Translations under genes and position numbers: made by a program
In this document: positions 1 to 62,100 of the stretch, piece by piece
How positions within the stretch are numbered: position 1 is the stretch's first letter
How the letters are laid out: each line of letters begins with the position of its first letter
Assembly: GCF_030028105.1 (NCBI RefSeq)
Contig: NC_092384.1
Span: forward strand, 17,553,629 to 17,617,628
Direction of reading: 5' to 3'
DNA: 64,000 bases
From: Mobula birostris
Lineage: Eukaryota
The notes under the pieces: model-generated
Database searches by the model: none
Told to the model about the DNA's origin: nothing
The model's input: the letters and a program-made list of their open reading frames with translations, nothing else

Positions 1-19
1 CTCGTGCATAATTTGAAGG

Positions 20-560
20 TGCCTTGATAGAGGTATTCAAAATATCCTGACCCACGGGTGAGAAGCCAGAGGACTGGATATGACTAATGTTTTTTAGGTG
101 TTCAAGAAAAGTTCTAAGAAGACGCAGGGATCTTTTAGGCTGGTAAGACTGACGATTGTAAATGATAACTTGTTACAAATATTCCAAGTGACAAGATACA
201 TAACTATTTAGATAGAAGTTGGAATAGCCATCAGGATTTTGTGCATGGTAAGTAGTGTCTGGCTTATCTTGAATAGCTTATCGAGGAGTTTACCAGAGAT
301 CATGTTGAAGGAAATGCAGTGGATGTTGTCTACATGGCAATCCCTTGGGCAAAGTCCGTAATGAGAGGCTGATCAAGAAGGTTCGGTTGGCATTCAGGAT
401 GTAGTAGTAAACTGCATTTCACATTGGCTTGGGGGGAAAGCCAGGGGGTGGCTGTCGACGGCTTCTCTCTGACTGGAGGCCTATAACTAGAGGTGTGCCG
501 CGGGGATCGGTGCTGGCTACGTTGATAGTTCTTAATTAATTTTTTATGACAATGGATTAA
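20..560 (+). mobile_element. Degenerate CR1 LINE RT fragment
   Basis: Decayed matches to CR1 RT segments intact elsewhere in the window (gcagtggatgttgtctacatgg; ctagaggtgtgccgcggggatcggtgctgg). Confidence 0.7.
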
Positions 561-773
561 ACTGGTTGAGAATTATTTTCAGATCTGCACAATGGGTAAC
601 GAATGCAGACAGCTGTAAAATGGGCTGTAAAATGACAGCTGGAATTCATTCGCTTTCGAATTCCATTCGTGCTCAGCTCTCTACCCTTTACATTATAACC
701 CTATCAAAATTCATCTCGATATTACGATTTCTATTTCTCTCCCTATTTTGAATGGGGAAAGAGGTATAGATAT

Positions 774-880
774 TCAGAAATTTTGCAAAGCACATTTGGA
801 TTGATAATTTGCAACAAATTGGTACATTATATTGCTATTAATTCTTTTGGATCTGGGTGAGTTTGTAACCTTGTCATATC
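774..880 (-). CDS. Gene 1 exon 4: cytoplasmic tail (G)YDKVTNSPRSKRINSNIMYQFVANYQSKCALQNF* with ITIM-consensus IMYQFV
   Basis: Acceptor tttatcaactctcttatag, phase 1, in frame with the preceding exon, ends at TGA 774-776. Confidence 0.6.
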
Positions 881-1082
881 CTATAAGAGAGTTGATAAAA
901 TTGTTCATGATTTGCCTCATGTGTGATGGGAAATCGAGCTTTCCAACTACAGCCACTCACATTAGTAACAATATTATTTCAACATCTTGCCTGCAATGCA
1001 AACATTACTTCACTTGCAAATAATTCCTTGTTTTTGAAGCACCTTCTCGATAATAATGCTAAAATCGAAGGGCATCACTAAC

Positions 1083-1199
1083 CTTGGACATTAGCTTTAA
1101 ATAGGAGATTGTCGATCGATAGGTCTGCACTGACAGCAGTTGTAAGGAGTACGATACAGCAAACAGAATCAGCGTTATTTCTCGTCCAATTGACGCTGC
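1083..1199 (-). CDS. Gene 1 exon 3: stalk/TM-like exon (G)SVNWTRNNADSVCCIVLLTTAVSADLSIDNLLFKANVQ
   Basis: Acceptor cacattttag, donor G|gttagt, 117 nt, phase 1-1, open, hydrophobic core; same length as the exon at 35737-35853. Confidence 0.65.
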
Positions 1200-1392
1200 C
1201 TAAAATGTGATTATTTTATTCTGTTCTTTTTAACTCTACAATTGGAGCTTGTAGAATGGGGTTTGCTTTGACGCGTGAAACAAATCCGCTCTCGCTGTTT
1301 GTTTTATCAAATAGTAACATTACATATTAATCTCATCATTAGCTTTAATTTAAATTGCACAAAAGCGAAAATCTCCTCGTAGCCGCACTAAC

Positions 1393-1698
1393 CGAACACA
1401 GTGAGCTTGGAGCCACTTCCATTCCAGAAAGATTGTTCCCGATACTTTGCTCCACAGTAGTAAATTCCGGAATCGGCGAATTTCACATCCAGAAGAACAA
1501 GCGTTCCTCTTGTCTTTTCGAGACTAAATCGTTTTCTGCTGTCACTTTCTAAAAATGCATTCTCGCCTTCCCTCCACCAAAGAAAGCTAACAGTATCTTT
1601 TGATATTTGAGTATTGCAGTGCAAGGTAACACTCGTCCCGCCCGGAACGTCCAAGTCCGTAGGGAATTGATATACTCTGAACGCAGGCACTTCGACTA
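1393..1698 (-). CDS. Gene 1 exon 2: V-set Ig domain with germline-joined J-like end (NKp30/CD28-family/NITR-like architecture)
   Basis: VTLHC...FLWW...DSGIYYC...WNGSGSKLTVF; acceptor tttatttttccggcag, donor G|gttagt, 306 nt, phase 1-1. Confidence 0.92.
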
Positions 1699-1898
1699 CT
1701 GCCGGAAAAATAAACAAGAGCATTAATAACAGCTACACACAGGGAATAAATAAGAACCTAAAGACCTGCTGGATGTTACTGGATAATGAAGAGACAAAGA
1801 CGACCGAATTGCTCAACCGCTGAAACTAGGTATGCAGCGCGAACCCAGGTTTAAGTTTTCTAAAATAGAATACTCAGTTGAGAAACGGAACATTTAAC

Positions 1899-1935
1899 TT
1901 AGCATACATAGACAGGTAATAGCCAGGAGCGCCAT
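1899..1935 (-). CDS. Gene 1 exon 1: signal peptide MALLAITCLCML
   Basis: ATG at 1935, hydrophobic peptide, phase-1 donor A|gttaaa (modest strength) joining the V exon in frame. Confidence 0.7.
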
Positions 1936-1968
1936 GTACGAAACCGTAAGTTTCTCTGACATATTACA

Positions 1969-7139: not shown

Positions 7140-9490
7140 TATCCTATATAACCATATAACTATATAACAATTACAGCACGGAAGCAGGCTATCTCGGCCC
7201 TTTTAGTCCGTGCCGAACTCCTACCTAATCCAACCGACCTGCACTCAGCCCAAAACCCTCTATTCCTTTCCTGGCCATAAAGCTGTCCAATCTAACGTTA
7301 AATGACAACATCGAACCTGCTTCAACCACTTCTGCTGAAGCTCGTTCCACACAACTACGACTCTCTGAGTAAGAAGTTTCCCCTCATGTTATTTCTAAAC
7401 TTTTACCCTTTAACTCTCAACTCATGTCCACTTGTTTGTATCTCCCCCACTCTCCACGTCAACTCTATCTATCCCCCTCATAATTTTAAATACCTCTATC
7501 AAGCCGCCCTCAACTTTCCGCATTCCAAAGAATAAAGACCCAACTTTTTCAACCTTTTTGTATAACTTAGATAATGAAACCCAGGTAACATTCTAGTAAA
7601 TCTTCTCTGTACTCTTTCTATTTTGTTGACATCTTTCCTATAATTCGGTGACCAAAACTGTACACAATACTCAAAATCTGGCCTCACCAATGCCTTGTAC
7701 AATATCAACCTTACATCCCAACTCCTATACTCAATGCTCTGATTTATAAAGGCCAACATATCAAAAGCTTTCTTCACCACCCTTTCCACATGAGATTCCA
7801 CCTTCAATGAATTATGCACCATTATTCCTAGATCCCACTGTTATAATGCATTCTTCAATGCCCTAGCATTTACCAGGTATGTCCTATTTTGATTAGTCCT
7901 ATCAAAATGTTTCACCTCACATTTATCAGCATTAAACTCCATTTGCCATCTTTCAGCCCACTCTTCTAACGGGCCTAAATCTCTATGCATGCTTTAAAAA
8001 CCTACTTCATTATTCACAACTCCACCCATCTAAGTATCATGTGCATACTTACTCATCCAATTTACCACCCCATCATCCAGATCATTAATGTATACGACAA
8101 ATAACATTAGACCCAGGACAGATCCCTGAGGCACCCCACTAGACACTGGCCACCACCACCACTCTCTGGCGTCACCCATCCAGCCACTGCTGAATCTATT
8201 TTACTACTTCAATGTTAATACCTAATGATTGAACCTTCCTAACCAGCCTTCCGTGTGGGAACTTGTCAAAGGCCTTACCGAAATCCATATAGACAACATC
8301 CACCGCTTTACCCTCGTCAACTTTCCCAGCATCCTCTTCAAAAAATTCAATAAGATTTGTCAAACATGACCTTCCACGCACAAATCCATGTTGACTGTTT
8401 CTAATCAGACCCCGTCTATCCAGATAATTATATATACCATCTCTAAGAATACTTTCCAACAATTTACCCACCACTAACGTCAAACTCACAGGCGGATAAT
8501 TGCCAGGTATACTCTTAGAACCCTTTTTAAACAATGGATCGACATGAGCAATACGCCAATTCTCCGGCACCATCCCCGTTTCTAATGATATTTGAAATAT
8601 TTCTGTCAGAGCCCCTGTTATTTCCACAATAACTTCCTTCAATTTCCCAGGGAATATCCTGTCCGGGCCCCGAGAATTATCCACGTTTATATTCCTTAAA
8701 AGCTCCAGTACTTCCTCTTCTTTAAAAATCATAATTTCCATAATTCCCTACCTGTTTCCCTTATCTAACACAATTCAATGTCCTTCTCCTCAGTGAATAC
8801 CGAAGAGAAGAATTTGTTCAGAATTTCCCTATCTCCTTTGGCTCAACACATAACTGTCCACTCTGATTCTCTAAGGGACCAATTTTACCCCTCACTATCC
8901 CTTTGCTAATAATATAATGGTAGAAACACTTGGGATTTATTTTCACCTTACTTTCCAAAGCAACCTCATATCTTCTTTTAGCTTTTAGCTTTTCTAATTT
9001 TTACATTCTTTATATTCCTCGAGAACCTCATTTACTCCATGCTGCCTATATTTATTGTAGATATCTCTCTTTTACCGAACCAATCTTCCAATATCCCTTG
9101 AAAATCGTGGCTCTCTCAAACTTTTAATCTTTCCTTTCAACCTAACAGGAACATAAATATTCTGTACTCTCAAAATTTCACCTTTAAATGACCTCCATTT
9201 CTTTATTACTTTCTTCCCATAAAACAAATTGTCCCAATCCACTCCTTTAAAATCCTTTCGCATCTCCTCACAGTTAGCCTTTCTCCAATCAAAAATCTCA
9301 ACCCTGTGTCCAGACCTATGCTTCTCCATAATTATATTCAAACTAATAGCATTGTGATCACTGGACCCGATGTGCTCCCCAACACAAACCTCCTTCACCT
9401 GACCAATCTCACTCCCTAACAGGAGATCCAACACTGCCCCTTCTCTGGTTGGTACCTCTATATATTGCTGCAAAAAAACTATCCTGAGGA
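7140..9490 (-). mobile_element. 5'-truncated CR1 LINE (end of EN, RT, 3' tail), disrupted
   Basis: ORFs 9072-9524, 8196-8741 (GNYPPVSL, QHGFVRGRSCLTNL, YMDFGKAFD) and 7499-7822 (LVRPDFEYCVQFWSP). Confidence 0.95.
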
Positions 9491-12169: not shown

Positions 12170-14680
12170 AAACTAGGTAATGATCAATAACTAGAAGATT
12201 ATGAGACTAGCAGGAAGGAGTTTAGGAATCAAATTAGGAGAGGCAGAAGGGGCCATGAGAAAGCCTTGGCAAGCAGGGTTAAAGAAAATCCCAAGGTATT
12301 CTACAAGTATGTGAAGAGCAAGAGGATAAGACGTCAGAGAATAGAACTAAACAAGTGTGACAATGGAAAAGTGTGTATGGAACTGAAGGAGAAAGCAAAG
12401 GTAGTTAATGAATACTTTGCTTCGGAAAAGTATTATGACGATTGTGGGGATGACTTCAGCGGATTGAAAGGCTTGAGCATATAGACATTAAGAAAAAGGA
12501 TATGCTGGAGTTTTTGGAAAGTCTCAAGTCTCCGGAACTGGACGAGATGCACTCCAGGATACTGTGGGAGGCGAGGGAAGAGATTGATGAGCTCTGACAA
12601 TGACCTTTGGATCATCAGTCGGGACGGGAGAGGGTCCAGAGGATTGGAGGGTTGTAGATGTTGTTCCATTATTCAAGAAAGGCAGTAGACCAGTCAATCT
12701 TACTTCTGTGGTTGGTAAATTGATGGAAAAGATTCTGAGAAGCAGGATTTATGGACATCTGGAGAGGCATAATATGATTAGCAAAAGTCAACATGGCTTT
12801 CTCAAAGGCATGTCGTGCCTTACGAGCCTGGTTTAATTTTTTGAAAGATGTGACTAAACACGTTGATGAAGGCAGAGTAGTAGATGTAGCGTACATGGAT
12901 TTCAGCAATGCATTTTATAAGGTATCCCATGCGAGGCTTATTGAGAAAGTGAGGAGGCATGGGATCCAAGGGACCTTGCTTTGCCGAAACAGAACTGGCT
13001 TGCCCACAAAAGGCAGAGTAGTTGTAGACAGGTCATACTCTGCATGGAGGCCCGTGACTACTGGTGTGCCTCAGGGATCTGTTCTGCGACCCTGTCTCTT
13101 CGTAATTTTTATAAATCACCTGGATGAGGAAGTGGAGGGACGGGTTCAAAAAATTGCTGATGATACAAAGGTCGGGGGTGTTGTCGATAGTGTGGAGGGC
13201 TATCAGAGGTTACAGCAGGACATCGATATGGTAAAAAAAAAATTGGGCTAAGAAGTTCCAGATAGAGTTCAAAACAGATAAGTCTGAGGAGATTCATTTT
13301 GGAAGGTCAAATATGATGGCAGAATAAAGTATTAATGTCAGGCTCTTGGCAGTGTGGGGGATCAGTGCAATCCTGGGGTGCGAGTCTTTTGGACACTCAA
13401 ACGTGCTCCGCAGGTTGACTCTGTTCACAAGAAAGCGTATGGTGCATTCACTGTCATAAACCATGGAATTGAGTTTAAGAGCCGAAAGGTAATGTTACAA
13501 CTTTATTGAACCCTTGTCAGACCCCACTTGGAGTACTGTGCTCTGTACTGGTCATCTCACTAGAGGAAGGATGTGGAAACTATAGAAAGCGTGCCGAGGA
13601 GATTTTAAAAAAGGTTGCCTAGATTGGGGAGCATGCCTTATGAGAATACATTGAGTAAACTCGTCCTTTTCTCCTTAAAACGGCGGAGAATGAGAGGTGA
13701 CCTGATAGAGGCGTATAAGATGATGAGAGGGATTGATCGTGTGGATAGTCAGAGGCTTTTTCCTAGGCCTAAAATGGCTTGAGAGGGCACAGTTTTAAGT
13801 GTCTGGACGTAGGTACAGAGGAGATGTCAGCGTTTTTTTTTTACGTGTAACGCTCAGTTATATTTTCTCGTATATGTCTAGGGGAAATCCCACCAGGCAC
13901 CTGCCTGAACGCTTCCTACTGAGTCGGTTGCTGACCCCTACCACCCGAATCAATCCCAAACATCAATCATCAGCCAGCACACACAGTACGTTTTGCACAG
14001 TACATTTTATACATATCACTAAGTCCATGAAACTAGTATACATTCGATACAGAAAAGGAAGCAATGGGGAAAAAAAGGCGCCAGACTTATCAAAGTCTAA
14101 GTTCTTCGTGCACAACAGTTGGAGCTCAATAAATTCCTGAGGACCACCCGGATCCTGTCGACTCACGGCTTGGGACCACCCAGAGTGATCTACCGGAGCC
14201 TTTCACACCGTCCGCCGTCCTTTCCGTCTCTCCTCTGACTCCTCGCCAAAAACTCCGTTCCCAGTCATATGAGACAGCATTATCACCCGAATAAAACGAT
14301 GACATTAATACCCATTGGCTAATAGCACCCTGCTATCTGTATTCACCCAAGAAAATGTCTAGCTAGAGATTTTCTCAGCATTTAACATAACAAAGAAGCA
14401 TTCCCAAGTATAACATAACAAAGAAGCCATTTTAAACTTAACACAAAAAAACCCATACATACGCAGTGAGTGGAGCGGTGAGTGCTTGGAATGCGGTGTC
14501 GGCGACAGTGGTGGAGGGGGATACCATAGGGTCTTTTAAGAGACTCCTGGATAGGTACATGGAGCTTCGAAAAATAGAGGGCTATTGGTAACCCCCGGAA
14601 ATTTCTAAAGTAAGTACATGTTCGGCCCAGCATTGTGGGCCCAAGGGCCTGTATCGTGCTGTAGGATTTCTATGTTTCCA
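12170..14680 (+). mobile_element. 5'-truncated CR1 LINE interrupted by a solo LTR
   Basis: SRVKENPKVFYKYV, QHGF, YMDFSNAF, GVPQGSVL, ADDTKVGG; 3' end resumes at 14460. Confidence 0.95.
13846..14459. mobile_element. Solo LTR, 614 bp
   Basis: TGTA...TACA termini flanked by 4-bp direct repeat tacg (13842-13845, 14460-14463); removal restores the CR1 sequence. Confidence 0.8.
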
Positions 14681-32879: not shown

Positions 32880-34740
32880 GGTGACTATAAAAGCTTTTAT
32901 AGATATGTGAAAAGAAGAAGATTGGTTAAGACAAAGGTAGGTCCCCTACAGACAGAAACAGGTGAATTGATTATGGGGAGCAAGGACATGGCAGACCAAT
33001 TGGCTAACTACTTTGGTTCTGTATTCACTAAGGAGGACATAAATAATCTTCTGGAAATAGTAGGGCTCAGAGGGTCCAGTGAGATGGAGAAACTGAGGGA
33101 AATACATTTTAGTAGGGAAGTGGTGTTAGGTAAATTGAAGGGATTAAAGGCAGATAAATCCCCAGGGCCAGATAGTCTGCATCCCAGAGTGCTTAAAGAA
33201 GTAACCCAAGAAATAGTGGATGCATTACTGATAATTTTTCAAAACTCTTTAGATTCTGGACTAATTCCTGTGGATTGGAGGTGGCTAATGTAACCCCACG
33301 TTTTTTTAAAAAAAGGAGGGAGAGAGAAACTGGGGAACTATAGACCGGTTAGCATAACATCTGTGGTGGGGAAAATGCTAGAGTCAGTTATCAAAGATGT
33401 GATAACAGCACATTTGGAAAGCGGTGAAATCATCGGACATAGTCAGCATGGATTTGTGAAAGGAAAATCATGTCTGACGAATCTCATAGAATTTTTTGAG
33501 GATGTAACTAGTAGAGTGGATAAGGGAGAATCAGTGGATGTGGTATATTTGGATTTTCAAAAGGCTTTTGACAAGGTCCCACACAGGAGATTAGTGTGCC
33601 AACTTAAAGCACACGGTATTGGGAGTAAGGTATTGATGTGGATAGAGAATTGGTTGGCAGACAGGAAGCAAAGAGTTGGAATAAACGGGACCTTTTCAGA
33701 ATTGCAGGCAGTGACTATTGGGGCCACAAGGTTCAGTGCTGGGACCCCAGTTGTTTACAATATATATTAATGACTTAGATGACAGAATTAAATGCAGCAT
33801 CTCCAAGTTTGCGGATGACACGAAGCTGGGCGGCAGTGTTAGCTGTGAGGAGGATGATAAGAGGATGCAGGGTGACTTCGATAGGTTAAGTGAGTGGGCA
33901 AATTCATGGCAGATGCAATTTAATGTGGATAAATGTGAGGTTATCCACTTTGGTGGCAAAAATAGGAAAACAGGTTATTATTTGAATAGAGACCGATTAG
34001 GAAAAGGGGAGGTGCAACGAGACCTGGGTGTCATTATACACCAGTCATTGAAAGTGGGCATGCAGGTACAGCAGGCGGTGAAAAAGCCGAATGGTATGCT
34101 GGCATTTATAGCAAGAAGATTCGAGTACAGGAGCAATGAGTTACTACTGCAGTTGTACAAGGCCTTGGTGAGACCACACCTGGAGTATTGTGTGCAGTTT
34201 TGGTCCCCTAATCTGAGGAAAAACATCATTTGCATAGAGGGAGTACAAAGAACGTTCACCAGATTGATTCCTGGGATGGCAGGACTTTCATATGAGGAAT
34301 GACTGGATCGACTAGGCTTATAGTCGTTGGAATTTAGAAGATTGAGGGGAGACCTTATTGAAACGTATAAAATCCTAAAGGGATCGGACAGGCTAGACGC
34401 AGGAAGATTGTTCCCGATGTTGGGGAAGTCCAGAACGAGGGGTCACAGTTTGAGGATAAAGGGGATGCCTTTTAGGACCAAGATGAGGAAAAACTCTTCA
34501 CACAGAGAGTGGTGAATGTGTGGAATTCTCTGCCACAGGAAACAGTTAAGGCCAGTTCATTGGCTATATTTAAGAGGGAGTTAGATATTGCCCTTGTGGC
34601 TAAAGGGATCAGGGGGCATGGAGGGAAGGCTGGTACAGGGTTCTGAGTTGGATGATCAGCCATGATCGTACTGAATGGCAGTGCAGGCTCGAAGAGCCGA
34701 ATGGCCTACTCCTGCACCTATTTACTATGTTTCTATGAAT
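32880..34740 (+). mobile_element. 5'-truncated CR1 LINE (RT, 3' UTR, ctatg tail)
   Basis: DKSPGPDSLHPRVLKE, QHGFVKGKSCLTNL, YLDFQKAFDKV, PQGSVLGP, KFADDTKLGG. Confidence 0.97.
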
Positions 34741-35141: not shown

Positions 35142-35299
35142 TCAGCTTCGCTGTTTCTTTGATGTATTTACATCTGCGTACAATGAATTTTGGTTTTGAT
35201 GTTTGGATGCTGAGTTGTTCTTGGAATCGGGAAGCTTCAGAGCAGCGTAAGTCAGTTTGTCATCTCTATTTGATTTAGTCTGTGAAAATATTTCATAAT
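35142..35299 (-). CDS. Gene 2 terminal exon: (D)YEIFSQTKSNRDDKLTYAALKLPDSKNNSASKHQNQNSLYADVNTSKKQRS*, two ITIM-consensus motifs
   Basis: LTYAAL and SLYADV fit (S/I/V/L)xYxx(I/V/L); acceptor gattaactgcag gives phase 1, in frame with the TM-like exon. Confidence 0.75.
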
Positions 35300-35736
35300 C
35301 TGCAGTTAATCGAGAATCCATTGAGTTGAACAAACTGCAAAATAATTAGTGATGCATTCATAAGTTATCAATTTTATGTTTCTACCGTTTTACACAAAAT
35401 TTATGTCAATTTTTTTTCAAAATTTCTCGTCTTAATTGATATGGTGTTTCAAGTCCAAGAGTCAGTGTTCTCCTACTGAACAATGAGCCGTTCTTTCCTT
35501 ACTTGAAATGAAGTGTAACAAAATCGTTTTGGTTTCTGTTCTTAACAACGTCACATTGTCCCCTCCACTCTGACTTCTAAGCACTTCCATCTTATTGAGC
35601 GCAAAAGATTCTGAACATGCTGAAATCCAGAGAAACACAGAAAATCCTGGAAGAACTCTGCCAATCAGGTAGATCTAAAGTGTCGACGTTTAAAGCCGAG
35701 ATCCAACATGATGACTTCATAAAAGCACCATCTTAC

Positions 35737-35853
35737 CTTGCTCCTGGAAGTAGCTGAAACTCGCAGGCACCGTGAGGGAGACATGTGATACCAGAAAGGT
35801 GTAAATATATTTTCGCCAAGTAGACTGCATGATTTCCAATGAACTAAAGGCTT
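35737..35853 (-). CDS. Gene 2 stalk/TM-like exon (E)AFSSLEIMQSTWRKYIYTFLVSHVSLTVPASFSYFQEQ
   Basis: Acceptor gtattttaag, strong donor G|gtaaga, 117 nt phase 1-1 as in gene 1. Confidence 0.6.
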
Positions 35854-36191
35854 CTTAAAATACATCAACGCTCCGGTTTGTCACACTTTCTATTTCAGCG
35901 CGAACTTGCTTGTTATTTCTTTGCCAAACGATTTCTAATTTCTCCGGGTAGAAGGCAACCATTTTACAAAGGAACTTTCGAGGAGACGAAAACCCTCCAA
36001 CAGGAACAATGAGCTTGAGTAAAAACAAAGTTATACTAGGTGTTCACGATTCATTTCATTGCGGATAGATTCCTTTCTCTCCGCGCCAACTAACATGACA
36101 CTCAACTATCAATTTAGTTACCCGCCAGTATTAATCAGTATTTAATAAAGTCGTTCAATTTCACGTTTGCTTTATTGTTCCTCAAGCATAC

Positions 36192-37167: not shown

Positions 37168-40100
37168 GCACCGAGATGTAGCTCCTCAGAGACCGTGTTG
37201 GGGATCTGGAGCTGCAGCTTGATGACCTACTGATTATCAGGGAAAGTGAAGAGGTTATAGACAGGAGCTACAGGGAGGTAGTCATCCCTAGGCTACAGGG
37301 GTCAGAGAACTGGGTCACTGTCAAGAGAGGGAAGAGAAATGCCCGGATAGTGGAGAGCACAGCTGTGGCTGTCCCCCTCAGCAACAAATATCTTGTTCTG
37401 GTTGCTGTTGAGGGGGATAACCTGACAGGGGACGCCCACGGTGACCGGGTCTCTGGCACTGAGCCTGGCGCTGTTGTGCAGGAGAGAAGGAGGGAGCAGT
37501 GGAATGCGGTAGTCATAGGGGGTTCCATAGTCAGGGGAACGGACAGGAGATTCTGTGAGCCTAATAGAGATACCCGCATGTTTTGTTGCCTCCCAGGTGC
37601 CAGGTTACGGGATGTCTCGGATCGGGTCCTGAATATTCTGAAGGGGGAGGGTGAGCAGTCAGTTGTCTTCGTACATGTCGGTACCGATGACATAGATAGG
37701 ACAAAGGAGGAGGTCCAGAAGAGAGATTTCTGGGAGTTAGGAAGGAAGCTGAGAAGCAGGACATCCAGGGAAGTAATCTCGGGATTGTTACCCGTGCCAC
37801 GTGCTAGCGAGGGCAAGAATAGTAGGATCAGGCAGATGAATGCGTGGCTGAGAGACTGGTGTAGGGGGCAGGGCTTCAGATTCTTGGATAATTGGGATCT
37901 CTTCTGGGCTAAGTACGACCTGTTCAAAAAGGACAGGCTTCACTTGAACCCGAAGGGAACCAATATCCTGGCGGGAAAGTTTAATAGAGCTGTTAGGGAG
38001 GGTTTAACCTAATTTGGCAGGGGGATGGGAACCAGAATGACAGAGCGAAGAATGGGGAAAACAGAAATAAATCTAAGATAGTGAGCAGTAAAGATGTCAG
38101 GAAAGACAGGCAGTTGATGGGGCAAATTTGTAGCCGTTAGGATGAGTTGGAGTGCAATAAAGTTGCAGTGAAATCAAAGCGAGAAGTACCAAATACTGGA
38201 CTTAAGGTGTTATGTTTAAATGCACGCAGCATAAGGAATGAGGTGGGTGATCTTGTCGTACAGCTACAGATTGGCAGGTATGATATTGTGGCCATCACGG
38301 AGACGTGGCTAAAGGATGCATTTCTCTGGGAGCTGAACGTCCAAAGATACACGGTGTAGCGGAAGGACAGGGAAGTAGGCAGAGGGGGAGGCGTGGCTTT
38401 ATTGGTAAGAAATGATATTAAATCATTAGAAAGAGGTGATATAGGATCGGAGGGTGCAGAATCTTTATGGGTTGAGCTAAGAAATCTCAGGGGTAAAAGG
38501 ACCGTGATGGCAGTTATTATAGGCATCCAAACAGCTGCAGTAATGTGCACTGCAAATTACAACAGGACATAGAAAAGGCTTGTCAGAAGTGCAGTGTTAT
38601 GATAATTGTGGGGGATTTTAACATGCGAGTGCATTGGGAAAATCAGGTCGGCACTGGATCTCAAGAGAGAGAATTTGTAGAATGTCTGCGAGATGGCTTT
38701 TTAGAACAGCTTGTTGTTGAGCCCACTAGGGGATCGGCTGTACTGGATTGGGTATTGTGTAATGAACCGGAGGTGATTAGAGAGATTGAGGAGAAGGAAC
38801 CCTCAGGGAGCAGTGAGCATAACATGATTGAGTCACTGTGAAAAAGAGAAGCCGAATTCTGATGTGTCAGTATTTCAGTGGAGTAAAGGAAATTACAGTG
38901 GCATGAGAGAGGAACTGGCCAAAGTTGACTGGAAAGGTACACCGGCGGGAAAGACAGCAGAACACCAGTGGCTGGAGTTTATGCGAGAAGTAAGGAAGGT
39001 ACAAGACAGGTACATTTCAAAAAAGAATAAATTTTCGAATGGAAAAAGGATGCAACTGTGGTTGACAAGAGAAGTCAAAGCCAAAGTTAAAGCAAAGGAG
39101 AGGGCATACAAGGAAGCAAAAATTAGTGGGAAGACAGAGGATTGGGCAGTTTTTAAAATCTTACAAAAGGAAACGAAGAAGGTCATTAACAGGGAAAAGC
39201 TTAACTACGAAAGGAAGCTTGCAAATAATGTCAAAGAGGATACTAAAAGATTTTTCAAGTATATAAAGAGTCAAACACAGGTGAGAGTAGATATTTGACC
39301 GATAGAAAATGATGCTGGAGAAATTGTAATGGGAGATAAGGAGATAGCAGAGGAACTGAACGAGTATTTTGCATCAGTCTTCACTGAGGAAGACATCAGC
39401 AGTATACCGGACACTCAAGGGTGGCAGGGAAGAGAAGTGTGCGCAGTCACAATTACGACAGACAAAATACTCAGGAAGCTGAATAGTCTAAAGGTAGATA
39501 AATCTCCAGGACCAGATGAAATGCACCTGCGTGTTCTGAAGGAAGTAGCTGTGGAGATTGTGGAGGCATTGGCGATGATCTTTTAGAAGTCGATAGATTC
39601 CGGCATTGTTCCAGAGGACTCGAAGATTGCAAATGTCACTCCGCTATTTAAGAAGGGGGCAAGGAAGCAAAAAGGAAATTATAGACCAGTTAGCTTCACA
39701 TCGGTGGTGGGAAAGTTGTTGGAGTTGATTGTAAAGGATGAGGTTACAGAGTACCTGGAGGTATATGACGAGATAGGCAGAACTCAGCATGGATTCCTTA
39801 AAGGAAAACCCTGCCTGACAAACCTATTACAATTTTTTGAGGAAATTACCAGTAGGCTAGACAAGGGAGATGCAGTGGATGTTGTATATTTGGATTTTCA
39901 GAAGGCCTTTGACGAGGTGCCACACATGAGGCTACTGAACAAGATAAGATCCTATGGCAATACGGGAAAGTTACAGACGTGAATAGAGCGTCGGCTGGTT
40001 GGCAGGAAACAGAGAGTGGGAATAAAGGGATGCTATTCTGGTTGGCTGCCGGTTACCAGTGGTGCTCCACAGGCGTACGTGTTGGGGCCGCTTCTTTTTA

Positions 40101-41085
40101 CATTGTACATCAACGATTTGGATTACGGAATAGATGGCTTTGTGGTTAAGTTTGCTGACGATATGGTGATATGTGGAGGGGCTGGTAGTGCTGAGGAAAC
40201 GGTGAGCCTGCAGAGAAACTTGGATAGATTGGAAGAATGGGCAAAAAAGTGGCAAATGAAATACAATGTTGGAAAGTGTATGGTTATGCACTTTGGCAGA
40301 AGAAATAAGCAGGAAGACTATTATTTAAATAGGGAAAGAATTCAAAGTTCTGAGTTGCAACGGGACTTGGGAATCCTCGTACAGGATACCCTTAAGGTTA
40401 ACCTCCAGGTTGAGTCAGTACTGAAGAAGACGAATGCAATGTTGGCATTCATTTCTAGAGGAATAGAGTATAGGAGCAGGGATGTGATGTTGAGGCACCA
40501 TAAGGCGCTGGTGAGACCTCACATGGATTACTGTGGGCAGTTTTGGTCTCCTTATTTCAGAAAGGATATGCTGAGGGTGGAGAGGGTACAGGAAAGATTC
40601 ACTAGAATGATTCCGGGAATGAGAGGGTTAACATATGAGGAAGGGTTGTCCGCTCTTGAACTGTATTCCTTGGAGCTTAAAAGAATGAGGAGAGACCTCA
40701 TAGAAACATTTTGAATGTTGAAAGGCATGGACCGAGTGGATGTGGCAAAGTTGTTTCCCATGATGGGGGAGTCTAGTACGAGAGGGCATGAATTAAGTAT
40801 TGAACTGCGCCCATTCAGAACAGAAATGCGAAGAATTTTTTTTAGTCAGAGAGTGGTGAATCTATGGAATTTGTTGCCACGGGCAGCAGTGGCGACCAAG
40901 TCATTGGGTGTATTTAAGGCAGAGCTTGATAGGTATCTGTGTAGCCAGGGCATCAAAGGTTATGGTGAGAAGGCGTAGGAGTGGGACTAAATGGAAGAAT
41001 GGATCAGCCAATGATAAAATGGCGGAGCAGACTTGATGGGCCGAATGGCCGACTTCTGCTTCTTTATCTTATGGTATTATGGTCT
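37168..41085 (+). mobile_element. Near full-length CR1: ORF1 SGNH esterase (37350-38012) and disrupted ORF2 EN-RT
   Basis: VVIGGSIVRG...CCLPGAR...VHVGTDD...HLN; CLNARSIRN, AITETW, GDFN; RT motifs; (ttatgg)n-like tail. Confidence 0.97.
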
Positions 41086-45629: not shown

Positions 45630-47690
45630 TAAAGACACTCATGAAGTTTTTCATACTGGTAGGTCTACCGAAGGAAATTCAATCTGACCAGGGTAGTAAC
45701 TTTACTTCGGGAACATCCCAGCACATAATTTATGAACTGTGGGCTAAACAAATTGTGTCACCTGCCTACCACGGTGCTTTGGAGTGGTTTCATTCCACTT
45801 TAAAGACCATGATTAAAACCTACTGTCATGAGAATGACAGGGACTGGGATGAAGGGATACACTTATTAGTTTTTGGTGTGTCCATTCCAGAATCCCTGGG
45901 GTTTATTCCATTTGAGCTCATTTTCGACCATGGCCCAAAGAATCTTTGACATAGCAGTTGTCTAACCCAAAAGTGTGTGTCAGTGTGTTAGATTATGTAC
46001 TGAAATTCTGGAAAAGACTTAATAGGGCAAGTGACCTTGCAAAACAGAATTTACAAAACTCCCAAGTTAAAATAAAACATTGGTATGATAAAAGAGCGAG
46101 GGACAGGTGTTCGAGGTTGGAGATAAGGTATTGGTCTTGTTCTCCCTGGTGACCAACCCCGTCCAAGCGCAATTACATGGACTACGTGAAATAATTAAGA
46201 AAATTGATTCTTTGAATTATGTTATTCAAACTCCTGACAGAAGAAAGGCCACCCAATTAGTGCATGTAAATATGGTGAAACCTTATTATGACTCTGAGAT
46301 GGTACCAGTAAGTACTGTTATGAAACAAAATGGGTTGTAGAATGTGGTAATGAGGTGCAAGATCATTTTAACAAGCTGAATATCATAACAACCAGACTTG
46401 AGAATTACAGTATTCTGACAGACCTTACTGATAAAGTCTGTCATCTGGAGCATGGACAGAGAAAGCAATTGAAAGAATTAATTAGTAAGCATAAAGATTT
46501 ATTTTCAAGACGGTGTACAGCTGCAGTGCATGACATCATTGTAAATTCCGGCCAGCCAATCAAACAGCAGCCTTACAGAATGATTTTAGAGAAAAATGAA
46601 ATGGTTGAACAAGAAATTGGAAACAAGAAAGAACAAGGAAAGAGAGTGGATGACTGTATTGCTAGAGTGAGAATGGCTAAATACGTTACAAAGATTGAGC
46701 TGGTGAAGCGATACTGGGGTGTTCCTTTAAAAGAGAGGGTTAGAGAAATATCTATATTTGTGACACCATCTGAACTGTATGAGTACGTACAATGGTTTAC
46801 CCTTCAGGATGAAAAATGCTCCAGGAACGTTTCAAGGAATGATCAACTTTATGATTAGAGGTCTAGAAAACACAGGGGCTTATATTGATGATTTAGTGGT
46901 CTGCAATGACACGTGGGAAGAGCATATTGCAGCGGTCGAAAAACTGTTTAAAGGGCTGCCCAAGGCCAATCTTACTGTGAACCAGATAAAAGTGAGTTTG
47001 GTCATGCCACAGTTACATATCTGGGCTATGTAGTAGGCCAGAGCCAACCGGCTCCTGTACAGGCCAAGGTTCAAGCTATTGCCGAGGTTCCCGTTCCACC
47101 GGGCAAGATAGCGTTAAGAAGGTTTTTTGGAACGGTTGGGTATTACCGAAAGTTTTGTAAGACCTTTGCAGATAACGCTCTCCCCCTTACGAAACTCCTA
47201 GGGAAGAGTGAAAGATTTGTATGCAGTGATCTTTGCCAGGAGGTATTTGAACACCTGATAACCATCCTGTGTTATCATCCCATGCTCAAAGCACCTGATT
47301 TTTCCAAGTCATTTTCCATAGCGCCAGACGCTATTGACGAAGCTTCTGGGGTAGTACTGTTACAGAGGGGTGAGGAAGAGATTGAACACCCAGTAGCTTA
47401 TTTCTCAAAGAAATTTAATGTACATCATAAAAAATTATTCCACTGTTGAAAAGGAGTTGATATCACTTATTTTGGCTTTACAACATTTTGAAATCTATGT
47501 TTCTCCTGCCCAGAAACCACTTGTGGTTTAGACAGATCACAATCCATTCGTGTTTCTGACTAAGATGAAGGATAAGAATAGAAGGTTATTAGAGTGGAGT
47601 CTGATATTGCAAGAATATGACCGGCAAATAAAACATGTGAAAGGTACTGACATCATTATAGCTGATTGTTTTTCCAGTTGTTAAATTAGA
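45630..47690 (+). mobile_element. Gmr1-type Ty3/Gypsy pol remnant, order integrase-RT-RNase H
   Basis: GLPKEIQSDQGSNF (45641-45949), FEVGDKVLV...VHVNMVKPY, then PIKQQPYR, YIDDLVV, then YFSKKF...YSTVEKE. Confidence 0.9.
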
Positions 47691-52888: not shown

Positions 52889-53604
52889 AACCCAAGCCTC
52901 GAAGATACCGCAGTCAAACTCCAAGAACGCAAGCCTCGAAGATCCCGGAGCCAAGCTCCAAGAACACTAGCCTCGAGGATCCCAAGCCAAGCTCCAGGAA
53001 CACCTGCCTCGAGGATCCCAAGCCAAGCTCCAAGAACACTAGCCTCGTTAATCCCAAGCCAAGCTCCAAGAACACAATCCTCGACGATCCCAAGCCAAGC
53101 TCCAAGAACATAAACCTGAAGTCCCCATCCTGCAGCCAAGCTCAAGACCCAAGGCTCCAGCCTGCAGCCAAGCTCAAGACCCAAGACTCCAGCCTGCAGC
53201 CAAGATCAAGTCCCAAGACTCCAGCCTGCAGCCAACCTCAAGACACAAGACCCCAGCATCAAGCCTCAAGAGCAAAGACCCCAGCCTGTCTCCAAGCTCA
53301 GGCCTCTAGACCCCAGCCAACGTCCTGTCCTGAAGGCATGTCATGTCTTTGTCTGGTTCTGGGGCCCGAGCCTGAGGCAAGACCCAGGTTCGGGGTCCTT
53401 GTCCTGTCTCGGGCTCGGAGTCAAAGCCTTGTCTCCTAGTCCCTAGTTTCTCGTCCTGGTCCCGCTTTCCCGAGCCCAAGTCTGCATTCTTGTCCCTGCT
53501 TCCTGCCTGTATCCTGTCTCGTCCCTACTCTAGTCAAGTCCTGCTCCTTGTACTTCATTGTCTGTGTCTCGCATTTGGGATCGTTCACAGCACCCTAGAG
53601 TGAC
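52889..53604 (+). mobile_element. Truncated related LTR with about 33-bp and about 21-bp tandem arrays
   Basis: ccaagctccaagaacactagcctcgaggatc and ccaagactccagcctgcag repeats; ends gagtgaca. Confidence 0.7.
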
Positions 53605-54539: not shown

Positions 54540-57500
54540 AGAAATCGGGTACAAAAAGTATTTTTTTTTAAACATTGCTCGGGGAGAATGGTCTGCACTG
54601 CGCAGGGCGTGACGTAACGCACCAAGGTTTGAAAACAGACCACCATATACAGCGGGCAGCATTGTGAGCGGGCAGCGGATTGAGAGGGAACAGAGTGGGA
54701 CGGCTTTGGTTCAGCAGGCTTCGGCGAGAACAGGTAGAGGCCAGGGTAGGTTCCGGTAAGTTATTTTTGTCCAGAGTGGAGAGAATGTGAGGCAGGGTGT
54801 TAGAATGCTCCTCTTGCAGGATCTGGGAGGTCACAGAGCCCTCCGGTGTCCCTGACAACTACACCTGCAAGAAGTGCATGCAGATGCAGCTGCTAACAAA
54901 CCGCTTTAGGGAACTGGAGCAGGAACTGGACCTCCGGATCATTCGGGAGAATGAGGAGATTATAGATAGTAGCTACAGGGAGGTAGTTACACCAAAGGAG
55001 CAGACCACAGGAAATTGTGTCACTTTCAGGCTAGGGAAGAGGAAGGGGCAAGAGGAGTACGGTTCCCCTATGGCCATTCCCCTCAACAGCAAGTATACCG
55101 CATTGGATACTGTTGAGGGGCGGGGGGTGGGTTACCTGGGACAAGCTGCAGCAGCCAGATCTCTGGCACTGAGCCTGGTTCTGCAGTACAGAAGGGAGGG
55201 TGGATAAAGAGGAGAGCAGTAGTGATATGGGACTCGATAGTTAGAGGTACAGATAGGGGGTTCTGTGGTTGTGACAGAGAATCCAGGATGGTTTGTTGCC
55301 TCCAGGTTGCCAGGGTCAAGGATGTCTCTGGTCGATTGCATAACCTTCTGAAGTGGGAGTGTGATCAGCCCGATGTCGTGGTGCACATCGGTACCAATGA
55401 CATAGCAAGGAACAGTGAGGAGGTCCTGGAGAGTGAGTATAGAGCTTGGCAGGAAGTTGAAAAGCAGGACCTCGAGGGTGGTAATCTCAGGATTGCTACC
55501 TGTGCTACGAGCCAGTAAGGATAAGAATAGGATGCTCTGGAGGATCAACAAGCAGCTGAGGAACTGGTGTAGGGGGCAGGGTTTCAGATTTCAAGATCAT
55601 TGGGACCTCCTCTGGGGCAGATGGGACTTGTACAAGAGAGACGGGTTACACTTGAACTACAAGGGAACCAATATCCTTTCAGGGAGGTTTGTTAGTGCTA
55701 TTGGGGAGGCTTTAAATTAGATTTGCAGGGGGATGGGAACCAAAGTGCCAGAGCTGACAGTGGGACAGGTGTGAAGATAAATGTTGTTAAAAGTTCAAGC
55801 AAAGCCGCAAATAGAAAGGTTGTGAGTGGTGTTAAAAATCTTTTGAGGTGTATATATTTCAATGCTAAGAGTATTGCGGGGAAGACAAACGAGTTGAGGG
55901 TGTGGATTGACACGTGGAATTATGACATTATAGCAATTAGTGAAATTTGGCTACAGGAGGGACAGGACTGGCAGCTTAATATTCCAGGGTTCCGATGTTT
56001 CATATGTGATAGAGGCAGAGGAATGAAAAGTGGGGGGGGGGCGGTGTAGAATTGCTTGTCAGGGAAAATGTTCAGGCAGGACAGATTAGAGGGTTGTCAA
56101 CTGAGTCCTTATGGGTGGAGCTGAGAAAAAGAAAAGGTATGGCCACATTAGTGGGGTTGTATTATAGACCACCCAATAGTCAGCGAGATATGGAGGAGCA
56201 AATCTGCAGAAAGATAGCAGGCACTTGTAGGAAACATAAAGTTGTGGTGGTAGGGGATTTTAATTTTCTACATATTGATTGGGACTCCTATACAGTTAGG
56301 GGTCTAGATGGGTTAGAGTTTGTAAAATCTGTTCAGGAAAGTTTTCGAAATCTATATATAGAGGTACCAACTAGAGGGGATGCAATATTAGATCTCCTGT
56401 TAGGAAACAAATTAGGGCAAGTGACAGAAGTCTGTGCAGGGGAGCACTTTGTTTCCAGTGATCAAAACACCATTAGTTTCAACTTGATCATGGATAAAGA
56501 TAAATTTGGTCCTAGGGTTGAGGTTCTAAACTAGAAGAAGGCGAAATTTGAAGAAATGAGAAAGGATCTGAAAAGCGTGGATTGGGACAGGTTGTTCTCT
56601 GGCAAGGATGTGATCGGTAAGTGAAAAGCCTTCAAAGGAGACATTTTGAGAGTGCAGAGCTTGCATGTTCCTGTCAGGATTAAAGGCAAAGCGAATAGGA
56701 ATAAGGAGCCTTGGTTCTCAAGGGATATTACAACTCTGATAAAGAAGAAGAGAGAGTTGTATGACATGTATAGGAAACAGGGAGCAAATAAGCTGCTTGA
56801 GTAGTACAAAAAGTGTAAGAAAATACTTAAGAAGGAAATCAGAGGGCCGAAAGAAGACATAAGGTTGCCTTGGCAGTCAAAGTGAAGGATAGTCCAAAGA
56901 GCTTTTACGGGTATATTAACAGTAACAGTAAGAGCTAAAATTGGTCCTCTTGAAATCAGTGATCGGATGTGGGCGGAACCAAAAGAAATGGGGGAGATCT
57001 TAATCTTTTTTTTGCGTCTGTATTTACTAAGGAAACTGGCATGAAGTCTATGGAATTAACGGAAACAAGTACTGAGATCATGGAAACTGTACAGATTGAA
57101 ATGGATGAGGAGCTTGCTATCTTGAGGCAAATTAAAGTGGATAAATCCCCAACACCTGACAGGGTATTCCCTCGGACCTTGAAGGAAACTAGTGCTGAAA
57201 TTGTAGGGGCCCTGGCAGATATATTTAAAAAGTCAGTGTCTACAGGTGAGGTGCCGGAGGATTGGAGAATGGCTCATGTTCTTCCGTTGTTTGAAAAAGG
57301 ATCGAAAAGTAATCCCGGAAATTATAGGCCGGTAAATTTGATGTAAGTAGTGGTTAAGTAACTGGAGGGAGTACTAAGAGACAGAATTTACAAGCATTTG
57401 GATAGACAGGGACTTATTAGGGAGAGTCAACATGGTTTTGTGCGTGGTAGCTCATGTTTGACCAATCTATTGGAGTTTTTCGAGGAGGTTACCAGGAAAG

Positions 57501-58700
57501 TAGATGAAGGGAAGGCAGTGAATGTTGTCTACATGGACTTCAGTAAGGCCTTTGACAAGGTCCCGCATGGGAGGTTAGTTAGGAAAATTTAGTCGCAAGG
57601 TATACATGGAGAAGTGGTAAATTTGATTAGACATTGGCTCATGGAAGAAGCCAAAGAGTGGTAATAGAGGATTGCTTCTCCGAGTGGAGGGCTGTGACTA
57701 GTGGTGTGCCACAGAGATCAGTGCTGGGTCCGGTGTTATTTGTCATCTATATCAATGATCTGGATGATAATGTAGTAAATTGGATCAGCAAATTTGCTGA
57801 TGACACACAGATTGGAGGTGTAGTGAACAATAAGGAAGGATTTCAAAGCTTGCAGAGGGATTTGGAAGAGCTGGAAAAACGGGCTGAAAATGGCAGATGG
57901 AGTTTAATACAGACAAGTGTGAGGTATTGCACTTTGGAAAGACAAACCAAGGTAAAGCATACAGGGTAAACGGTAAGGCACTGAAGAGTGCAGTAAACAG
58001 AGGGATCTGGGAATACAGATACAACATTCCCTACAAGTGGCGTCACAGGTAGATAGGGTCATAAAGAGAGCTTCTGGTACATTGGCCTTTATTGATCAAA
58101 AGAGCTGGAATGTTATGATGAGGTTGTATAAGGCATCGGTGAGGCCGAATCTGGAGTATTGTGTTCAGTTTTGGTCACCAAATTACAGGAAGGGTATTAA
58201 TGAGGTTGAAAGAGTGCAGAGATGGTTTACAAGGATGTTGCAGGGACTTGAGAAACTCAGTTACAGAGAAATGTTGAATAGGTTAGGACTTTATTCCTTG
58301 GAGCATAGAAGAATGAGGGGAGATTTGATAGATGTATATCAAATTATGATGGGTATAGATGGAGTGAATGAAAGCAAGCTTTTTCCACTGAGGCAAGGGG
58401 AGAAAAAGAGGACTTGGGTTAAGGGTTGGAGGGGAGTTTAAAGGAAACATTAGGGGGCGGCTTCTTCACACAGAGAGTGGTGGGAGTGTGGAATGAGCTG
58501 CCAGACGAGGTGGTAAATGTTGGTTCTTCTTTAACATTTAAAAATAAATTGGACAGATACACGGATGGGAGGTGTATGGAGGGATATGGTCCGTGTGCAA
58601 TGCAGTGGGACTAGGCAGAATATGGTTCGGCACAGCCAAGAAGGGCCAAAAGGCCTGTTTCTGTGCTGTAGTTTTTCTATGGTTTTCTATGTTTTTTTTT
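54540..58700 (+). mobile_element. Essentially full-length CR1: 5' UTR, ORF1 (Cys-pair finger, coiled coil, esterase), ORF2 EN-RT, tail; multiple stops and frameshifts
   Basis: CSSCRIWE...CKKC; DSIVRG, VHIGTNDI, DGLHLN; FNAKSI, GDFN; RT motifs; ctatggttttctatg tail. Confidence 0.97.
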
Positions 58701-59169: not shown

Positions 59170-62100
59170 GGGGCATGGATGGAGTCTAAGTACAAGAATA
59201 AAAAGTCCGTTCAGAAGGCTGATAAATATAAACAGACGCAGCAAGACGAGGGGCCTAGCTCCCCTCACGACGAGCCAGGACGTATATAATGTGGAAGAAT
59301 CGGTGAAGCTGACTTTGACTCTTAGAGAAATTCGTGATTTCTGACAAGATATCAACAAACAGCTGGAAGATATTAAAGGATAAATAGGAAAAACTGATCT
59401 GAGATTAGATGAAGCTGGGCTGTAGGGACTGAGGAGAGGCTGCAAAACGCAGAGGAAGTGATAGAAGAAATGCTGAAGCATCAAGAGCAGCTCCAGTGGA
59501 AGCTAATTGACCAAAAAGGCCACTCTAGAAGGGAAAATATGACGATCTAGGAGTTCCCAAAGGAGTTGAAGGTAAGCCTGGATTGGTGATTCCATTCGTA
59601 GAGAAGCTGCTTCGAGAGAACATTGCAATACCAGACGCAAAAGATCTACAGAGACAAAGGACCCACCAAGCGTTGGCACCCCATCCCCTGGTTGATGCCC
59701 AGCCCAGATCGATTTTAGTCAGATTTCTCACTAACAGAACGAAGGAAGAAGCTAGTGCTACGTGACGGTGATGGTAAGAATTGGAGCAGATGGCAGTTGA
59801 ATGCGTGGCTGAGGAGTTGGTGCAGGGAGCAGGGATTTAGATTTTTAGATCATTGGGATCTCTTCTGGGGAAGGTGGGACCTGTACAGATTGGCTGGGTT
59901 GCACCTGAACTCGAGGAGGAGCAATATCCTTGCAGCTAGGTTTGCTAGCATGGTTCGGGAGGGTTTAAACTAATTTGAGAGGGGGATGGGACCCAGAGCG
60001 ATGGAGCAGTGAAAGAAGTGCATGGAGTAAAGCCAGATCTAACATACAGAGAGGCTTTGAGCAAAGAGAAGCAGAATAAACGGTGTAAAGACAGTAAGGT
60101 AGAAGGGCTGAAATGTGTGTACCTCAATGAAAGAAGCATCAGGAACAAAGGTGATGAAAGGTGAGCTTGGATACATACATGGAATTATGATGTAGTGGCC
60201 ATTACAGAGACTTGGCTGGCACCAGGGCAGGAATGGATTCTCAGTATTCCTGGATTTCAGTGCTTTAAAAGGGATAGAGAGGGCGGAAAAAGGGGAGGAG
60301 GGTTGGCATTACTGGTCAGGGATACTATTACAGCTGCAGAAAGGGTGGGTAATGTAGCAGGATCCTCTTTTGAGTCAATATGGGTGGAAGTCAGGAACAG
60401 GAAGGGAGCAGTTACTCTACTGGGGGTATTCTATAGGCCCCTTGGTAGCAGCAGAGATACAGAGGAGCAGATTGGGAGGCAGATTTTGGAAAGATGCAAA
60501 AATAACAGGGCTGTAATCATGGGTGACTTTAACTTCTCTAATATTGATTGGCACCTGATTAATTCCAAGGGTTTAGATGGGGCAGAGTTCAAGTGTGTCC
60601 AGGATGGATTCCTGTCACAGTATGTGGACAGGCCAACCAGGGGGAATGCCATACTAGATCTAGTATTAGGTAATGAACCGGATCAGGTCACAGATCTCTC
60701 AGTGGGTGAGCATCTGGGGGACATTGACCACCGCTCCCTGGACTTTATAATTATCATGGAAAAGGATAGAATCAAAGAGGACAGGAAATTTTTTAATTGG
60801 GGAAAGGCAAATTATGAGGCTATAAGGCTAGAACTTGTGGGTGTGAATTGGGATGATGTTTTTGCAGGGAAATGTACTATGGACATGTGGTCGATGTTTA
60901 GACATCTCTTGCGGGATGTAAGGGATAAATTTGTCCCGGTGAGGAAGATAAAGAATGGTAGGGTGAAGGAACCATGGGTGGCAAGTGAGGTGGAAAATCT
61001 AGTCAGGTGGAAGAAGGCAGCATACATGAGCTTTAGGAAACAAGGATCAGATGGGTCATTTGAGGAATATAGGGAAGCAAGAAAGGAGCTTAAGAAGGAG
61101 CTGAGAAGAGCAAGAAGGGGGCATGAGAAGGCCTTGGCGAGTAGGGTAAAGGAAAACCCCAAGGCATTCTTCAATTATGTGAAGAAAAAATGGATGACAG
61201 GAGTGAAGGTAGGACCGATTAGAGATAAAGGTGGGAAGATGGGCTTGGAGGCTGTGGAAGTGAGCGAGGTCCTCAATGAATACTTCTCTTCGGTATTCAC
61301 CAATGAGAGGGAACTTGATGATGGTGAGGACAAGATGAGTGAGGTTGATGTTATGGAGCACGTTGATATTAAGGGAGAGGAAGTGTTGGAGTTGTTAAAA
61401 TACATTAGGACAGATAAGTCCCGGGGCCTGACGGAATATTCCCCAGGCTGCTCCACGAGGCGAGAGAAGAGATTGCTGAGCCTCTGGCTAGGATCTTTAT
61501 GTCCTCGTTGTCCACGGGAATGGTACCGGAGGATTGGAGGGAGGCGAATGTTGTTCCCTTGTTCAAAAAAGGTAGTAGGGATAGTCCGGGTAATTATAGA
61601 CCAGTGAGCCTTACGTCTGTGGTGGGAAAGCTGCTGGAAAAGATTCTTAGAGATTGAATCTATAAGCATTTAGAGAAACATGGTCTGATCAGGGACAATC
61701 AGCATGGCTTTGTGAAGGGCAGATCGTGTCTAACAAGCCTGATAGAGTTCTTTGAGGAGGTGACCAGGCATATAGATGAGGGTAGTGCAGTGGATGTGAT
61801 CTATATGGATTTTAGTAAGGCATTTGACAAGGTTCCACACGGTAAGCTTATTCAGAAAGTTAGAAGGCATGGGATCCAGGGAAGTTTGGCCAGTTGGATT
61901 CAGAATTGGCTTGCCTGCAGAAGGCAGAAGGTGGTGGTGGAGAGAGTACATTCAAATTGGAGGATTGTGACTAGTGGTGTCCCACAAGGATCTGTTCTGG
62001 GACCTCTACTTTTCGCCTGGATGTGGGGGAAGAAGGGTGGGTTGGCAAGTTTGCAGACGACACAAAGGTTGGGGGTGTTGTAGATAGTGTAGAGGATTGT

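Follow-up and report, generated by a model that had tools for sequence, protein, structure and literature searches.

This locus raises the question of whether four short open stretches at the left end of the window, as the whole 64,000-nucleotide piece of Mobula birostris DNA analyzed herein is called, make up a complete receptor gene by themselves. In the original prediction, 1899-1935, 1393-1698, 1083-1199 and 774-880 of the reverse strand were spliced into a compact single-Ig receptor comprising a leader, a V domain with a germline-joined J-like strand, a TM-like segment and an ITIM tail. The geometry of this chain was confirmed, in that all four stretches have GT-AG borders and phase-1 junctions and together give an open frame of 188 aa. 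Among the four proposed exons, only 1393-1698 was independently recognizable as coding.

The exon at 1393-1698 (-) encodes the last leader residues, a V-set Ig domain and a germline-joined J-like strand, enters and leaves in phase 1, and ends at the donor G|GTTAGT. Its 101-residue domain matched the Pfam V-set family (PF07686) with an E value of 1.6e-10 and carried the canonical Cys27, WW40-41, DSGIYYC and J-like GSGSKLTV residues. All the positions that are invariant across 34 family sequences (Q10, G20, C27, W40, D75, G77, Y79 and C81), as well as the nearly invariant G93, G95 and V100, were retained in the window V. The J-like GxGxxLxV strand is encoded in the same exon as the V-set domain, and YYC (codons 1462-1454) reads into it in frame. 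Neither a heptamer nor a nonamer was found between YYC and GSGSKLTV, and no CACAGTG or nonamer was present in or around the exon. The window V is thus a germline-joined, non-rearranging VJ domain, as originally proposed, and its identity as a rearranging Ig/TCR V segment was rejected because no recombination signal follows YYC. The sequence CACTGTG, the reverse of a recombination-signal heptamer, does occur at 1397-1403 (-) within the L-T-V codons of the J-like strand, with no nonamer; it is very probably coincidental. An AlphaFold2 model of the domain reached a pLDDT of 89 with the 34-sequence alignment and 57 without an alignment. In a Foldseek search, the modeled V domain scored best against CD79b (3kg5; E 3e-9, TM 0.76), and the TCR V-alpha and IgNAR V domains scored almost equally.

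The leader, which had been placed at 1899-1935, was relocated by comparison with the homologues to 1908-1962 (-), an exon of 55 nt (18 codons plus 1 nt, phase 1) with the donor T|GTATGC. Its translation, MSEKLTVSYMALLAITCL, runs from the ATG at 1962 to 1909 with one further base at 1908, and is identical to the start of XP_062923618.1 from Mobula hypostoma at 17 of 18 residues. The leaders of the relatives all start with MSEKFTVSYMALLAITCL, followed by one split codon, and in nearly all of them residue 20 is the first of the V domain; the same split leader (18 residues plus one base, MSEKFTVSYMALLAITCL type) is present in the window copy. The T at 1908 and the TA opening the V exon together encode Leu, the same as in XP_062923618.1. 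Agreement with the homologues is obtained only via the 1908 donor, whereas the leader 1935-1899, with the donor GTTAAA, would insert CML and turn this Leu to Ile, residues found in no relative. The leader is split by an intron of 209 nt (1699-1907, (-)), whose acceptor, ...tttttccggcag, has a strong polypyrimidine tract.

When 1.8 billion representative proteins were searched exhaustively with the V exon using HMMER, one 285-aa protein was retrieved at 97% identity and 240-410-aa proteins at 37-56%, each as a single-stretch match. Compared with XP_062923618.1 (P0003), the window V was identical at 98 of 101 residues (97%) and differed by three conservative changes; its identity was 93% to P0151, 90% to the M. 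birostris protein XP_072135431.1 (P0159) and 85% to XP_072135231.1 (P0152), a long-tailed M. birostris paralogue. A maximum-likelihood tree built from 33 V domains placed the window V as sister to XP_062923618.1 (path 0.027) inside a six-member clade with 100/100 support, and the distance between the two resembled those of other M. hypostoma/M. birostris pairs. In these sequence comparisons, the window gene corresponds to XP_062923618.1 as a counterpart from a different Mobula genome would. The earlier assignment to a cartilaginous fish was borne out, the gene being from Mobula, a manta or devil ray, as was that of a VJ-type Ig domain that does not rearrange. The homology search and phylogeny that had been proposed as a check recovered a predicted counterpart; the spliced third and fourth exons were left without relatives.

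Further predicted members of this family include XP_062923619.1 from M. hypostoma and XP_059849400.1 from Hypanus sabinus, and many more annotated relatives were found in rays, sharks and one chimaera. Their naming in databases is inconsistent: NCBI predicts dozens of members as SIRP-alpha-like, NCR3LG1-like or Ig-lambda-like, calling XP_062923618.1 "natural cytotoxicity triggering receptor 3 ligand 1-like" and XP_072135431.1 "immunoglobulin lambda-1 light chain-like". The suggestion that the family might be undescribed accordingly failed as regards databases, where it is already predicted; in the literature searched, no study on shark SIRP-like or VJ-C1 ITIM receptors was found. No annotated protein with exactly the window V domain was present in the protein collections searched, and the M. 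birostris annotation may have skipped the window gene or called it a pseudogene. Taken together, we judge the window gene to be real and to belong, as an ordinary member, to a SIRP-like family that is predicted but unstudied.

Nearly all full-length relatives share one layout, namely an 18-residue leader exon, a VJ domain, a C1-set domain starting with APPTPLEIVP, and a strong membrane anchor (GADT..GGSAIL.. type) with a 19-residue Kyte-Doolittle score of 2.2-3.0. A domain scan identified one V-set and one C1-set domain in each of P0003, P0152, P0159 and P0153, and the four closest relatives (P0003, P0151, P0152 and P0159) combine V-set and C1-set domains with anchors of 2.2-2.8. The long-form tails of the family carry TxYAxL, IIYSQT, LTYAxL and xLYADV motifs. 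The window copy resembles these elasmobranch VJ-C1 receptors in its leader sequence, the position of its split leader, its FWNGSGSKLTVF end and a V domain that is 70-97% identical, and also in residing in a same-strand tandem cluster with another, dead member. It differs in that the C1, anchor and tail exons known from the relatives were not found in the window for this copy.

This common layout was hard to reconcile with a compact single-Ig receptor of four exons, as nearly all full-length annotated close relatives continue after V with a C1-set domain and a different, far more hydrophobic anchor, and neither 1083-1199 nor 774-880 resembled any part of it. No homologue of the 45-codon frame around 1083-1199 or of the 60-codon frame around 774-880 was found in about 45 family proteins, a small set in which all phmmer E values exceeded 0.2. 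Conversely, when the post-V parts of nine relatives were compared with window positions 1-1392 by tblastn, no C1, anchor or tail homology was detected even at an E value of 50. The TM-like segment assigned to 1083-1199, SVCCIVLLTTAVSADLSID, contains two Asp and scored 1.62 on the 19-residue Kyte-Doolittle scale, against 2.2-3.0 in the family, and the acceptor of this exon is preceded by a purine-rich tract. Past the proposed stop in 774-880, neither AATAAA nor ATTAAA was found in 776 nt. A TM-like segment in the third exon and an ITIM tail in the fourth could therefore not be upheld.

The frequency with which such chains arise by chance was estimated with Markov-1 random sequences matched in length and composition; a chain required an open exon bounded by AG...GT and containing a TM-like stretch, followed by a terminal exon of at least 20 codons. 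At least one chain with GT-AG borders, an open frame and a TM-like segment was obtained in 25% of the random sequences, the real sequence permits 58 alternative chains with many different terminal exons, and the ITIM consensus appeared in 8% of random open 35-aa tails. The tail with YDKV and IMYQFV is thus no more than chance expectation. Open frames of 30-60 codons are also common on both strands around 774-1199. These observations indicate that 1083-1199 and 774-880 are most likely chance open frames in the V-to-C1 intron, of which positions 1-1392 (-) most probably represent the first 1.39 kb. The same interval includes a retroelement-related fragment at 226-530 (+), which starts about 250 nt downstream of the proposed stop and, in retroelement-rich DNA, matches 57425-57741 at 66% identity and, in part, 61754-61808. 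An ITAM reading of YDKV...YQFV was also considered and rejected, as the 14 residues between the YxxV motifs exceed the consensus spacing of an ITAM and the exon itself is unsupported.

The gene of XP_062923618.1 spans 5.6 kb and that of an M. birostris paralogue 10.2 kb, whereas the window offers only 1.39 kb between the V exon and its left edge, which is the downstream side. This difference suggests that the C1, anchor and tail exons of the window copy are probably located beyond that edge. Our preferred reading, which we consider probable, is that 1962-1393 (-) represents the first two exons of a non-rearranging SIRP-like VJ-C1 gene, that its remainder lies to the left of the window, and that the proposed third and fourth exons are chance frames. 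The split leader and the germline-joined VJ domain would then open the gene, with a C1-set exon, a GADT...GGSAIL... anchor and cytoplasmic exons following downstream. By analogy with the relatives, the mature product would be a type I membrane protein, whose antigen-receptor-like V domain, spaced from the membrane by one C1 domain, would bind a ligand, and its signaling would be set by the tail: phosphorylated SIRP-alpha-like motifs of the XP_072135231.1 type would recruit SHP-1/2.

Both kinds of tail are found among the closest relatives. The tail of XP_072135231.1 contains three ITIM/ITSM-like motifs (TAYASL, LTYATL and TFYADV) plus VIYSQT, and those of XP_062923618.1 and XP_072135431.1 are short and have no tyrosines. 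The window copy may accordingly be inhibitory like the former, or may be a tail-less partner or decoy. The proposal of an inhibitory or regulatory receptor hence holds for some members of the family, which are of the inhibitory type, but the ITIM tail proposed for the window copy itself is unsupported. The tyrosine-free short tails of P0003 (residues 266-285) and P0161 (residues 267-285) resemble each other (V.V...L.SER.I), start with Val and share the exon boundary at which they depart from the long forms. In XP_062923618.1 the short tail leaves the long form exactly after ...QNEDP; together with the starting Val, this gives the appearance of a GT donor read through into the intron, and the short tail may be an annotation or splicing variant.

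Three other readings of the locus were weighed against the one preferred here. The most serious is that the leader and V exons are an orphan relic whose C1, anchor and tail were lost in a decaying tandem cluster, leaving a non-functional or V-only unit with a frame still intact because the loss was recent. Copies in the receptor cluster of the window do decay, as was evident from a dead paralogue located on the same strand about 33 kb upstream of the VJ exon, and this counts against the preferred reading. The C1-set exon of the dead paralogue, at 35720-36010 (-), showed 81.5% tblastn identity to XP_072135230.1 but is interrupted by an in-frame stop (VDVF*EAF) and no longer encodes the second Cys (YTFLVSH versus YTCLVSH). 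Its last cytoplasmic exon, at 35154-35291 (-), was 76% identical by tblastn to residues 300-345 of the same protein and keeps the LTYAAL and SLYADV motifs; no V or anchor exon belonging to it was detected in the 36-64 kb part of the window. The predominance of retroelement debris in the window and the lack of an annotated protein with exactly this V domain would also fit a relic. In the window copy, nevertheless, no damage is seen in the leader, at either splice site or at any invariant V position, and its V domain is only three conservative changes from XP_062923618.1, the M. hypostoma counterpart, whose annotation shows an entire V-C1-TM gene; we therefore regard a relic as unlikely.

It is very improbable, in our estimation, that the leader-V pair is one of at least two alternative cassettes upstream of a single C1-TM unit, selected by promoter and splicing, an arrangement that, if true, would amount to a non-rearranging, promoter- and splice-selected multi-V receptor gene. 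What speaks for it is a mosaic pattern: XP_072135431.1 and XP_062923618.1 are identical at 98 of 98 residues in C1, 92 of 101 in V and 17 of 34 in the anchor, and the window V is the closest V to XP_062923618.1 despite the C1 identity of XP_072135431.1. Such a mosaic points to gene conversion, or to a sharing of exons, among members of the cluster; however, the two nearest M. hypostoma genes each own slightly different C1 and anchor exons, and gene conversion between tandem paralogues provides the simpler account. Most improbable of all appeared the chain as first drawn, in which V is spliced to lineage-specific exons at 1083-1199 and 774-880 to give a single-V ITIM receptor of 188 aa, or 194 aa with the corrected leader. 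Besides its open frame, GT-AG borders and phase-1 junctions, it can claim that IMYQFV fits the ITIM consensus and that C1-skipping isoforms such as XP_072106610.1 are predicted in the family, yet such an isoform keeps the family's own anchor exon. The missing homologues of both exons, the weakly hydrophobic, Asp-containing anchor, the purine-rich tract at the acceptor, the missing poly(A) signal and the chance rates described above all argue against this chain.

The layout had earlier been likened to that of NKp30/NCR3, CD28/CTLA4, CD8 and NITRs, in all of which V is followed directly by a stalk and anchor with no constant domain; these single-V receptors were rejected, as the closest relatives of the window gene have a C1 domain after V, and the nearer kin were found to be SIRP-alpha, UrIg2 and antigen-receptor chains. 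In a PDB search with the ectodomain of XP_072135231.1, SIRP-alpha (2wng) was the best non-antibody match spanning V and C1 (E 4e-16), UrIg2 (9dmx) followed at an E value of 1.7e-14, and SIRP-gamma, light chains and TCR-beta scored lower. The nearest named Atlas clusters for the paralogue were likewise SIRP-alpha (0.96-0.97, 205-209 shared features).

SIRPs, which consist of one V-set and two C1-set domains, are paired receptors: SIRP-alpha acts via ITIMs and SHP-1/2, SIRP-beta via DAP12, for which its anchor carries a basic residue, and SIRP-gamma is almost tail-less (PMC12975943). Like SIRP-alpha, beta and gamma, the ray proteins carry at the N-terminus a V domain that includes a J-like strand, with a C1-set domain after it, their paralogues carry multi-tyrosine tails of the (T/L)xYA(S/T/D)L type, and members with inhibitory tails and members with short tails are both present in the family. 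Since the relatives possess one C1 domain rather than two and share only about 25-30% identity with SIRPs, a SIRP orthologue was rejected. Binding of CD47 by the V domain is a trait of the SIRP family and is not attributed to the ray family.

UrIg and UrIg2 are non-rearranging elasmobranch relatives of antigen receptors, and UrIg2, which has nine to eleven C domains and dimerizes through disulphide bonds, is located in the antigen-receptor complex (PMC12227049). Despite the UrIg2 match noted above, in UrIg/UrIg2 the VJ unit is followed by at least three C1-type domains, whereas the ray relatives have a single C1 and often ITIM-type tails. Given these many C domains against the single C1-set domain in the relatives scanned, identity with UrIg/UrIg2 was rejected. 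CD79b (Ig-beta) resembled the window V as the best Foldseek match and also as a full-length PDB sequence match, both having short V domains; however, it has an ITAM and no C1 domain, and the identity is only 27-30%, so that this assignment was likewise rejected for a family whose members have a C1 domain and no ITAM. PRARP is reported to combine an ectodomain of a non-rearranging VJ and a C1 domain with a membrane anchor and a tail that bears an ITIM, and PRARP genes may be related to the ray family. Fu et al. 2019, on PRARP, is cited in PMC10751288.

The finding chiefly amends the gene model, in which a "minimal single-V ITIM receptor" was most likely an artefact of chaining intronic frames near the window edge. 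With the V exon, a large tandem cluster of antigen-receptor-shaped VJ-C1 receptors in rays, which do not rearrange, gains one more copy, and genes of this type bear on the origin of Ig/TCR chains and of SIRP-type paired receptors.

The window itself contains no N runs, has a G+C content of 43.7% and gave no match in an Rfam scan. Most of it consists of retroelement debris between receptor genes, with broken reverse-transcriptase, RNase H and endonuclease frames at 8199-8747 (-), 12778-13248 (+), 33715-34299 (+), 39983-40711 (+), 46952-47446 (+) and 60165-61604 (+). A further open frame at 52891-53436 (+) is composed of tandem PKPSSKNTSLEDP-like repeats.
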